A stretch of 64,000 nt of DNA, taken from Piromyces finnis finn. Lineage: Eukaryota; Fungi; Neocallimastigomycota. The translations under genes and the position numbers were made by a program. The notes beneath the pieces are model-generated. The model did no database searches, had not been told where the DNA came from, and saw nothing but the letters and a program-made list of their open reading frames with translations. The number at the start of each line of letters is the position of its first letter. Position 1 is the first letter of the stretch. This document shows positions 55,031-60,636 of this stretch, piece after piece. Location of the stretch: positions 496,001-560,000 of the forward strand of contig MCFH01000027.1 in assembly GCA_002104945.1 (NCBI GenBank), read 5' to 3'.

Positions 55031-55897
55031 TTACATTTTAATAGAATTTAATAATTCTAATTGACGTGAAAATCTACTGCTTTTCGATGGAGTCTATTCA
55101 ATTCACATTTCATTATTAAAAAATATAAAAAATAAAAAGAGTATTAATAAAAAGAATTACAAGGAAATATTAAAAAAAAAAATTGTAAAAAAAAAAAAAT
55201 AAAAGAAGAGAGAATTTAAGAATAACAACTTACCAAAGGTACAGTAGATTGAATCATTGCTTTATAAGAAGAAATTGCTTCCGATAGAACTACTTTTGGA
55301 TCAGCTTTGACAGGTGCATTATTCTCTTCAACCTTTACATTATCTTTTATAATGTTATCACCATTATCTTTATTATTATTATCATTGTTATTTGTCATTG
55401 AGGAATCAAGATTTTGAGTGGAGATCGGTAGATCAAAGGTGGTAGATTCCTTTTCATTTAATTGTTGTTGTTGTCTCATTTCTTGTAAAAGTTTTAATTG
55501 ACGAGATAAACGACTATTACTATAAATATTTTCATGAGATAATACCTCTTCGATATTGGTAGATGGAACAGAAGAATTGGAAATGGAAGATTTTATCAAG
55601 GTTTCATTACCATTATCTCCTTCTGGTAGAGTAGAAAAGGCCTGACCTTCTTCTTCCTCATTGGTAAGTTTTGGGTAATTCACAGAAATTAAAGAATTAG
55701 AATTTGTCATCATTAAACCTTGTCCTTCTTCTAATTCCGATAGAAAATCGAAATCACTCATATAAGCGTTTAATATACTTTTGTTGTTTTTAACTAACGA
55801 TTCATAACGAGTACATTTTTTTTCTTTTAATTCATGATATTTTTTCAATACAAATTCATAAAAGTCATCTCCACTACAATAAAAATAAGTATTATTT

Positions 55898-55928
<31 letters not shown>

Positions 55929-56847
55929 CAGGATATTCAATATAATGTTTTAGAAATTATAGATTTATAAAAAAAAAAAAAAGTTAGAAATATATTATAC
56001 CATATTTCAGAAGCATCGTAAACTTCATCAAATAAAATAGAAGATGTATCATTTTGTTCTGTAGAGTTATCTATAGAACGAGTTGAAGCTTCACTTAAAT
56101 ACAATGACATGTAATGTAAGGCTTCAACACTATGGTCAATTGATTCTGTTTCCATAAAGATATCCTTTAATAATAGTAATTTAAAAAAAAAATTAATATG
56201 TTAAAAGTTGTACACTTTCATAAAAGTTAAATAATACATTTATTCATAAGATAAACATACCATTAAATGAATACCGAGAAGGCCCCATATTTCCTTTATT
56301 AAAGAATTATTACATTCTCCACGAATTTCTAAAATAATTTTGTTTATTTCTTCAGTAGAATAAACATCATTTATCATATATTTGTATTTTGACTATGAAA
56401 AACATAAAAAAAGCAATAATAAATAAATATATAAATATAAATGAGTTATTATAAATATAATAAATAAAAATAAAAAAAAATATATAGTTATTATATTTTA
56501 ATAATATATTATTATTTACTCTTCCATAATTAGCAATTAAAGAATACCAGAATTTTTCAATCTTTGGAGATACAGCTGCGATAGGATGTTGTATAACAGA
56601 AAGGAAAAAAGTTTGACCAACAAAAGTACTACCCTTGAAATAATTTTTATTTTGTGAACATTTAATATGACGTTGAATAATAAGGATAAGAAGGAAACAA
56701 GTAATGTCTTCCAATGTAACCATATTTTGATTATTTAATGAAGAGAGCTATAAGAGTATAATAATAATGAGTGTTAAATTTTTGAATAAATCATTTTGTT
56801 CTATTTATTTGCTTACTTTTATTTATATTATTTATATTATTTTTATA

Positions 56848-56884
<37 letters not shown>

Positions 56885-57421
56885 TATATCTTACATTTAA
56901 ATATTCTGGAACATTTGGGAAAAGGAACCTTAAGTAACGATGATAAGTACCATTATATAAATGCCACATACAAATATTTAATAATCTATTATAATAAATA
57001 AATAAATAAATTTAAATTTTTAATTTATGAAAATTAAAAGGATATTCATTCTTACTTAATTATAAATAAAATAAAATATATTCCAACATACTTTGTTAAA
57101 GACCATGGTTCATGAATAATATAAAGATCAGAGGCAAAGTAATGTTCTAATGGGAATGGAAAATCTTCAAAATCATCATTTTCAGTTATTTTTTTATAAA
57201 TAAGATCTAAATGACTATCCTTGAAATAAAAGATACGAGTTTCTTGTTCATCAATTATAATTGGAATATTCATACTATTAAATGATGCTATAACATCATC
57301 TTCTAAAAATTCTTTGAAAATAAATTTATAAATTATATTCATATTATTAATATGATTTTTATTATTATCGATTTTATTTGCATAATAATAAAGATATAAA
57401 TATTATTATTATTATTATTAT

Positions 57422-57454
<33 letters not shown>

Positions 57455-60400
57455 TAATAGTATTAATATTATTTTTATTATTTATTTATTTATTTTTTTG
57501 GGGGATTAATATACAATATTAAAAATAATAATAATAATAAATTATCTTTTATTATTTTTTATATAAATGTGTTCGATTTTCTTACCTTGATTTTCTTTAT
57601 TCAATGATGATAATGGAGATTGTTTAATCCATGCAAGATTATAGCATAAAATAAAAGATAAGAGATGATAAAATGAATCGCTTAAACGTTCACATGCTCC
57701 TAAGGATTGTTGGAAACTAATTCTTTCATTATCATCAATATTAATGCTGAGTTGTTTTGCATTATTACTAGAAACATTTAATTGATCCGTACTATTATTA
57801 AGAGAATTGATACTACTAGCATTTACTGCTTGGTATTTAGCATATCTCAATTTTTTAGTAATATCATCTAAAATTGTTTCATGATAAGAAGCTTTAATTG
57901 CTTTATCATCTAATTCTTGTAATTCATTAATTAATTTACAATCTTGGTCTATATTAATTATTAATAATAAAGTATGTTAGTTAGTTACAAGATAATGAGA
58001 AAAAAAAAAAAAAGGAATAATTGACAAAAATATTTTATTTTATATATAGAATAATCTTTTTTTTTTAATATCAACATACAAGAAAAACATAATTTCCAAT
58101 AAGTTATTGATTCTTTAATAGTAGAATACCAGGTTTCATCACTTTGTTGACATTCTCTCATAATACGTTCTACATCAATAGTTTTATGCTTAACATACCT
58201 TGCCATGAATTCCTTTAAAATAATATTTAAAAAATAATTAAAAGATATTAAGAAAGGATGATCATAATAAAATAATCTAAAAGATTATTGTATATATATT
58301 AATATTATTATAATTTAAAGAAGAAGAAAAAAAAAAGGTGATCAAAAAAAAACCTTTACTTGTTTAACAGAATAAGAATTTTCATTAATTAATTGATCTT
58401 CACTTGATGGCATTTTATTGCTTATTACATCCTTTAATTTTTTTAATTCTTCTTTCGAATCCTCTCCACTAAATTATGATTATAAATAATGATAACAGAT
58501 TTTAGAGATTAAAAAAAAAAAAAGAAAGAAAGAAAGAAAAAACCAATAATATATTTAAATTAATAAACTATAACAAAATATAAAAATTTAAATATATATG
58601 AAATTAAATGATAGATAATATAAAATAATTACTTTTCTAAATGAAGTCTGACAATATTATCCAAAGCAAATAAATATTCTGCCCATACTTCAAGCTTCAA
58701 TAAATCTACATTTTTGCTTTTAGTATATATTTCATTCCAAAAAGCTTCTTCAAAGGTTTCTATATAGTCTCGTACAAATTGATTCCATTTTAAATTATGT
58801 CTATAATCCCATGAATGTTTAACAATATGAACCCAACAACTAAAGATTAAAAAATATTAAACATCGGTTACAAAAAAAAATATGGATGATGATTGTGATA
58901 TTATAAAGTTTTGTTAATATGGATAGCAAAAAATATTAATGAATAATTATTTATTTAAATAAATAACATTAAACTGATTAATAAATCAGTCAAAAGAAAT
59001 AAAAAAAAAAAAAAAAATCTTTACCTTTCAAAATCAATATATTTCAAGGCTTTTAAAATTCTAAACTGGAGATCAAAATTTAATGATATTTCTGGTATGT
59101 CTAATAAAAAGCAGAGATCTACTAATATCTTATCTTTGTTATCTGTGTTTTTAACATTTAATAAAAATAAAAAATTATTCATCAAAATTTACCAAGAATC
59201 ATTTTCTGGGGAATGTTTTTTTTTTTTTTTTTAAGTTCAATTATTATAAACTTTTTTTTTTTTCTATTATACATATATATTATATACATGGGTATATTAT
59301 CAAAATATATATTAAAAAAATTTTTATACCTTCACCAATTCCTTTTTCAATAATTTTACTGTAAAAGAAGTCGATAAACTGAAGTGTTTGAGAATTGTAT
59401 TTTTCAACGATTTTTCTTAAACTTTATTATTATTATTATTATTATTATTAAAAAAAACATTATTATATTTTGAAATAAAACAATTAAAGAGAGTGAGTTG
59501 CCAAGTTTATTATAAAAATTAATAAAATATTGATAATGAAATACTTTTGTAGCAAGGATATAGCTTCAAAACATTCTTCTTCATAATCATTACTTCTATT
59601 ATTTATTTTTTGATTAACAATATGCATAATAGTAATGACCACTTGATAATATTTATAATAAATGAATGAATAAAATAAATGATATTGAACAAAATATAAT
59701 TATTATAAGAAAAAGGAATTAATATTTTTGATTATTAAAATCAGTAATGTTTATTAAATTATTTTTTTTTTCTTTGATATGAACCATCTATGGTATACTT
59801 TTCTTTAAGTTTTGAATTATTTGTTGTTTGAATACAACTAAATTATTGATGAAACAAAATACAAAATTTAAAACAAGAATTATGTTTTGGTTAATAATTT
59901 TAATATTAAATCTGTTTAAATAAAAAAAGGAATAAATTATTTTTCAAAAATTTTATATATATATATATATTATTCAAATTACTTTTCAAATTCTTTTTTT
60001 GCTTTACTAAATTTTTCTTGTTTTAAATATATTGAACCTAAGATAGAATAAAGCTTTATTATATAATAGTTATAAATGATAATAAATTATTGAAATAAAA
60101 AGTAATAATTAGATATATATAAATTTATTAATCCTTATTAGTTTTATAAATTCTATATATTTATGATGATTATTTCCATTGAATAAGAATATTTACTTGA
60201 TTCTGATTAATTTTCTTTTCTAATAATTTTTTTATATATTTTTCGGCTTTTTGAAGCCATGCCTATTAAAAAAATTTGGGAATTGAAGAAAGGTAGTATA
60301 AAAAATAAAATACAATAATAAAAAAAATATGTTTATGTATTTTAAAAGTATATATATATATTATTAGTAAAAAGTGTTTTAATACGATTAATAAATTAAA

Positions 60401-60636
60401 TGATTTTAAGAAAATTATTGATAAATTTCTATTTAAAATTATGGAAAACACATGTATATATATATATATATTTTTCACATTGTTCTATCATTTCCATTTT
60501 AACAAAGGTACTACTTATTTAATACAATGATTTTTTATAATTAAAATTTAATTAATTGACATACAGTATCTTTTGGATTATTATCCCAATTTTGAAATGC
60601 ATTATTTATAGATTTAATACATATTTTCTCAACCAT
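55031..60636 (-). CDS. Multi-exon (~19) TPR/alpha-solenoid protein resembling the N-terminal domain of Nup358/RanBP2; about 1000 aa; no RanBD, ZnF or cyclophilin domains seen
   Basis: Manual splicing gives, in order: MVEKICIKS...AWLQKAEKYIKK...LYSILGSIYLKQEKFSKAKKEFEK (TPR), YRHNLKWNQFV, EFMARYVKH, WYSTIKESITYWKLCF, GACERLSDSFYHLL, RYLRFLFPNVP, VTLEDITCFLLILI, EKFWYSL, EALHYM; last exon 55093-55031 ends in TAA. The 5' end is uncertain (an upstream ATG at 60676 is 1 nt out of frame). Confidence 0.8.

Follow-up and report, generated by a model that had tools for sequence, protein, structure and literature searches.

On the minus strand of the Piromyces finnis sequence analysed here (64,000 nucleotides (nt) of contig MCFH01000027.1, hereafter the window), positions 60636 to 55031 hold a gene for a 992-amino acid (aa) protein that shows weak colinear similarity, in the right order, to the N-terminal domain (NTD) of human NUP358. 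A first-pass annotation had proposed a homologue of the Nup358 N-terminal solenoid at this place, and in our analysis the fungal protein is probably homologous to that domain. On balance, we favour the view that the gene is a highly diverged orthologue of the Nup358/RanBP2 N-terminal docking domain, and propose that early-diverging fungi may well keep a truncated Nup358, in which the ring-docking NTD is followed by a short tail with conserved helices and the Ran-binding machinery is missing.

The exons were found by translating the minus strand in three frames, and the short open stretches were then joined at GT..AG sites. This independently built model comprises 18 exons with a coding sequence of 2979 nt, begins with an ATG at 60636 and has a stop codon ending at 55031, in agreement with the gene limits of the first-pass annotation. 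All introns follow the GT..AG rule and are 71-302 nt long, the frame is continuous and free of internal stops, an in-frame stop is located 30 nt upstream of the ATG, and the G+C content across the gene region is 13-25%. The gene and its exons are as follows.

55031..60636, minus strand: whole gene, 18 exons with GT-AG junctions and a 992-aa product; the metagenome contigs L001, L011 and L020 have the same exon order and intron places
60636-60565, 60262-60197, 60053-59983, 59911-59799, 59641-59545 and 59421-59330, minus strand: exons 1-6
59142-59025, 58839-58633, 58468-58360, 58212-58080, 57948-57586 and 57311-57092, minus strand: exons 7-12
56985-56895, 56747-56520, 56392-56261, 56164-56001, 55873-55234 and 55093-55031, minus strand: exons 13-18

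Among 1.84 billion representatives searched with exon 11, the only match was the 151-aa open reading frame (ORF) fragment P0001, which is 67% identical, and no full-length relative was seen. The source of P0001, contig L001, carries exons 1-11 in order, while L011 and L020, which derive from the same species as L001 or a close one, contain exons 12-16 and 16-18, respectively; L016 and L015 represent a third and a fourth species. All relatives found are ORF fragments; they come from four close species and lie on metagenome contigs of JGI, ENA and Logan. The orthologue of the second species is 77% identical at the protein level, and its introns are unalignable but sit in the same places. Per-exon identity to the orthologous contigs is 57-100%, and the ratio of nonsynonymous to synonymous substitution rates (dN/dS) over 706 codons is 0.18 (dS = 0.62). 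The gene is real, conserved and under purifying selection. Four runs from three studies, which are only guessed to be RNA, hold a fraction of 0.40-0.42 of the 31-mers of the gene, and a fully spliced mRNA corresponds to 0.437. A DNA pattern across the exon 7/8 junction, aimed at spliced transcripts, had no match in metagenome contigs, and a search for related loci with an alignment of exon 8 matched 150 pattern sites and found no relatives.

Intron content differs among the close relatives of the gene. In the third species (L016:488-808), exons 15 and 16 are fused in one ORF of 102 aa and intron 15 is absent. Exon 4 (59799-59911) is poorly conserved compared to L001:2640-2790; its donor GTATAC reads ATATAC in L001, where the frame needs a splice 9 nt further, at GTTCAT.

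The first-pass annotation based its proposal on at least eight blocks thought to be colinear with the human protein. When the human strings were joined into two short PDB queries, the six longer ones turned out to be true NUP358 NTD residues, located (7r5j_00 numbering) at 66-83 (LGLLY..), 198-207 (RSSLEWNSCV), 284-292 (EMKGHFYMH), 347-359 (ACDRLSQSGHMLL), 456-465 (WLKQLFHHLP) and 481-489 (ILDLEVFLL). The fungal strings are also found where the annotation had placed them, with RHNLKWNQFV at 58802-58773 and ACERLSDSFYHLL from 57697, and the verified human strings are colinear with the fungal model. The 49-residue human segment 456-504 and four more short blocks were verified likewise (WWDAV lies inside the verified block 529-541), and the PDB alignments additionally provided the human segments 172-194, 220-228 and 256-280, which nobody had chosen. 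For pairwise tests, 247 verified human residues were set at their true positions with X elsewhere; in addition, each human block was scanned along the whole model, with significance taken from 2000 shuffles of the model. The matches that stand out are located at human 198-216, 342-359 and 456-504, the last of which is divided between two exons.

58746..58802, minus strand: model 223-241 (R..L.WN..V) against human 198-216, the best site in the model
57659..57712, minus strand: model 439-456 (..SLGACERLSDSFYHLL) against human 342-359, high-scoring segment pair (HSP) score 37
56895..56942, minus strand: first half of the anchor match, model 569-584 (end of exon 13, YLRFLFPNVPEYLN) against human 454-469, within the phmmer domain pairing model 569-619 with human 454-504
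56643..56747, minus strand: second half of the anchor match, model 585-619 (start of exon 14, ..TLEDITCFLLILIIQRHIK..) against human 470-504, from phmmer and the ungapped score

One segment is clearly unusual, two others support it, the three are in order, and the signal lies mostly in the second half of the domain. Human 456-504 and model 571-619 share a single ungapped diagonal, which spans both WLKQLFHHLP and ILDLEVFLL. This 49-mer scores 50 at model position 571 and 3 at the next site, and its score was reached by 1 of the 2000 shuffles. These values have to be set against the possibility that the protein is a lineage-specific fungal TPR or alpha-solenoid protein with another function, unrelated to Nup358, and that the colinear matches are chance likenesses between amphipathic helices, found because they were sought. 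The 49-mer score is far above what decoys achieve, as 7251 residues from further proteins encoded in the window reach only 33, and the reversed model does no better. Two more sites that are the best in the model, again in the right order, also argue against chance. For human 342-359, the HSP score of 37 was reached by 2/2000 shuffles, the scan placed the block at model 439 with 32 compared to 13 for the next site, and LGACERLSDSFYH within model 439-456 is identical in P0001. For human 198-216, the best site is model 223 (31 compared to 18), within a run of 26 residues that is invariant between the two fungi, yet 152/2000 shuffles reach the score. From the order and placement of these three segments, and from the architecture of the protein considered below, we infer homology to the NUP358 NTD.

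Several observations weigh against this interpretation, some of them in favour of an unrelated solenoid. A calibrated phmmer comparison of the model with the X-masked human NTD, restricted to PDB-verified residues, gave E = 0.023, and a profile of three fungal sequences against the human NTD lowered the pairwise score and gave E = 0.2, so that the pairwise significance is 0.02 to 0.2. Even the pairwise p of 0.02 is biased, since the first-pass annotation had picked Nup358 for looking similar. Shuffles also underestimate how often buried amphipathic helices match. In favour of homology, a Smith-Waterman alignment with free X joined human 347-605 to model 444-722 in a chain whose offsets are 97, 114, 115, 117, 115, 120 and 117; its score of 81, compared to 40.9 +/- 5.7 for shuffles, corresponds to a Gumbel p of ~7e-5, which is optimistic because unknown human residues cost nothing and many of the blocks had been chosen for likeness. 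For the human segments that had not been selected for likeness (172-194, 220-228, 256-280, 282-293 and 442-455), the alignment path offers no advantage in score over other positions (p 0.47-0.87), which leaves the N-terminal half with a single supporting block and a generic TPR. Likewise, the TPR block (human 66-84), assigned to model 51, has a better site elsewhere in the model, and 24/2000 shuffles reach its best segment score, while the pairing EFMARYVKH/EMKGHFYMH is outside the top four sites, its implied site scoring 7, a value reached by 54% of equal-sized windows. Lysines K500 and K502 of the human protein face S615 and N617 in the anchor alignment, with lysines nearby at 613 and 618. 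Both human residues belong to the basic set on the concave face for which the 2R5K mutant indicates a role in binding RNA and NUP88; neither is kept in the fungal protein, and the five N-terminal residues of the set are unplaceable. Finally, NUP358 was absent at E <= 10 from the PDB matches of exons 8, 11 and 14, searched singly or, for exons 8 and 14, also as small profiles, and the known relatives are ORF fragments from a narrow set of species and metagenome contigs. Considering these points together with the shuffle and decoy results, we regard an unrelated solenoid as rather unlikely, although it is the more serious of the two alternatives that we weighed. The first-pass proposal of a Nup358 homologue has been borne out in part: the gene and its weak colinear likeness are confirmed, and the homology is probable, with an E value of only 0.023, or 0.2 with the profile.

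The idea of eight colinear blocks also needs to be narrowed. The blocks at 456-504 and 342-359 beat shuffles and 198-216 falls on its best site, but EMKGHFYMH and the TPR block are unspecific. AEKYI/AKKYI and FWYSL/WWDAV, with five residues each, are too short to weigh; scored inside the 20-residue block 525-544, the latter pair reaches 12 on the chain, which is its second-best site. Of the additional human blocks that we brought in, those starting at 366, 525 and 601 fall on their second to fourth best sites in the model. On the alignment path, the blocks at 366, 525, 552 and 601 have p values of 0.02-0.07, but they were chosen for likeness and are not counted as evidence.

The predicted layout of the protein also bears on whether it is related to Nup358. 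The model consists of at least one N-terminal TPR-like motif, a helical solenoid of ~800 residues and a low-complexity tail of ~190 residues.

59985..60053, minus strand: TPR-like half repeat LYSILGSIYLKQEKFSKAKKEFE in exon 3, matched by TPR_2, TPR_8 and TPR_1; 100% identical in the second species

Searches for Pfam families, PDB entries and homologues were made exon by exon, with pieces of 22-213 residues. Exon 3 matched TPR_2, TPR_8 and TPR_1 at E values of 0.004-0.005 over profile positions 4-25 of 34, which is below the Pfam cut-off because an intron splits the repeat. No other exon gave a Pfam match, and none of them matched TPR or HEAT profiles. The remainder of the protein is predicted to be helical and is not a regular repeat array, in which it differs from generic TPR/HEAT solenoids. 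For the exon 14 fragment, AlphaFold predicted three long helices and one short helix with low confidence (pLDDT 54); look-ups in protein atlases for exons 8, 11 and 14 had no usable result.

The human NUP358 NTD (residues 1-752; PDB 7MNJ, 7MNL-7MNO, 7TBL and 7R5J, with the TPR part in 4GA0) starts with TPRs, where the fungal model has its sub-threshold TPR-like half repeat. The human domain is all-helical, and the fungal one is predicted to be so, over ~750-800 residues; a linker and then a short amphipathic helix, putative in the fungus, come next. In length, the fungal helical part is similar to the domains of human (1-752) and Dictyostelium (1-780). The TPR-like motif at the same end and the matching domain length count against an unrelated solenoid. 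On the other hand, even the best segment is ~20% identical to the human NTD, an alignment of the N-terminal half is hardly possible, and human ~690-752 has no clear fungal counterpart. The fungal exon 11 also carries an insert of ~35-60 residues rich in N and S, which the human domain does not have. The two fungi have this insert (57740-57840, model ~398-432) in different lengths and with different sequences, and it makes up most of the extra length compared to the human domain at that point.

A second alternative is that the protein has diverged from some other helical family already described, for instance that of a TPR adaptor or a different scaffold nucleoporin, and could not be recognized from single exons. 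Long solenoid families are often invisible in pieces of the length used here. However, the exon-level Pfam searches did not return Nic96, Nup84/107, Nup85, Nup133 or any other family even at E <= 10, and PDB searches, apart from those in which human strings had been entered on purpose, gave no match below E ~0.1. Pfam has no model covering human NUP358 456-504 or 525-544, and silence in Pfam is therefore what one would expect of a Nup358-like protein. For the same reason, and as the PDB pieces comprised 68-120 residues, the blanks obtained with single exons weigh little. Membership in another helical family is thus quite improbable in our view, and a Nup358-type NTD is the reading that we follow below.

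The first-pass annotation had also described the gene as lacking all downstream parts of Nup358, and this holds. Unlike full-length human NUP358, the fungal protein has no Ran-binding domains, zinc fingers, E3 (IR) region or cyclophilin domain; exon 17 (213 aa) gave no Pfam match, and the 5 kb downstream of the gene, between 49600 and 55030, contain no coding-like ORF. Instead, the protein ends in a tail that is of low complexity and otherwise divergent, in which the islands DFDFLSxLEEGQxLMMT, GNETLIK, LEEV and RLSRQLxLLQxM are kept in three species.

55477..55515, minus strand: tail motif 1, SRLSRQLKLLQEM (model 879-891), conserved in three species
55040..55078, minus strand: tail motif 2, SRFSRQLELLNSI (model 978-990), in the last exon, the second copy of the motif; L020 has TPSKSKRLSRQLELLNSYRN*, preceded by an intron at the same place as in the window, and L016 has TPSRLSKRLSRQFDILNSI

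The window, P0004 and P0005 share RLSRQL.LLQ.M without change, and the amphipathic RLSRQLKLLQEM, conserved in the tail, recurs at the C-terminus. In the human NTD, an oligomerisation helix follows ~50 residues past the domain. The fungal tail helices recall this post-domain element in position, and their sequence is unlike that of the human element. The pattern [SK]R[LF]SRQLxLL occurs in two copies, in the tail and at the very C-terminus, in three species (L020:1500-1560, L016:2079-2135), and the R-x-S core of RLSRQLxLL resembles a basophilic-kinase site.

How plausible a fungal Nup358 relic is also depends on the age of the domain. Several papers call Nup358 vertebrate- or metazoan-specific, and a survey from 2010 found it only in animals, early-diverging fungi being unsampled. 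The view that it is specific to animals, from which the first-pass annotation started, is outdated, as the Dictyostelium pore has Nup358 (Hoffmann et al., bioRxiv 10.1101/2024.01.17.575985). The orthologue in this amoeba is UniProt C7FZW3, a 'RanBP2-type zinc finger' protein, of which aa 1-780 were modelled and two copies per spoke were fitted in a cytoplasmic ring with only one Y-complex ring (bioRxiv 10.1101/2024.01.17.575985). As Nup358 is present in Amoebozoa, it should also have been present in the ancestor shared by animals and fungi, which raises the prior for a fungal relic, and a documented origin before the fungi counts against the unrelated solenoid discussed above. Our literature search found no paper that links Nup358 with any fungus, whether anaerobic fungi, chytrids or other early-diverging fungi. 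The D. discoideum protein resembles the Piromyces one, by description, in being non-animal, in coming from an AT-rich genome and in having an N-terminal domain of the same size; it differs in the zinc fingers for which it is named, and of which the fungal protein has none. As the amoebal protein contains zinc fingers, the ancestor probably already carried them, and the fungal NTD-only form would have arisen by secondary truncation. The NTD-only ancestor that the first-pass annotation had envisaged is therefore unlikely.

By analogy with human and Dictyostelium Nup358, we infer a location of the fungal protein on the cytoplasmic outer ring of the nuclear pore. In this view, the docking domain would have been kept without the array of Ran-binding, zinc-finger, E3 and cyclophilin parts, and the protein could act as a structural clamp against the Y-complex stalk and Nup93. 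The conserved helices of the tail might serve as oligomerisation or linker elements. Given its fit in the single-ring Dictyostelium pore, the domain does not need a double outer ring.

If this proposal is correct, the structural clamp and the Ran platform of Nup358 are separable in nature, and the fungal NTD-only form would be a natural minimal version for asking what the docking domain does alone. The fungal and Dictyostelium proteins together would date the domain before the split of Amoebozoa and opisthokonts. Dikarya would then have lost Nup358 altogether, in a step-wise fungal loss that removed the Ran-binding array first and the whole gene later, and Nup358-type density would be predicted on the cytoplasmic ring of chytrid-grade fungi. 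The Dictyostelium precedent makes such a finding less surprising, and the sequence-based case for homology, at its present strength, would lower the weight that it can bear.

Other genes of the window include a probable retroelement just upstream of the gene (61392-63972, minus strand), with an RVT_1 ORF (E 1e-23) and fragments resembling reverse transcriptase. Two long ORFs at 26164-31583 on the minus strand, with ABC2_membrane_3 and ABC_tran domains, probably belong to a single intron-split gene for an ABCA-type transporter. A 716-aa ORF at 6789-8936, also on the minus strand, contains a protein kinase domain (Pkinase, E 8e-24).

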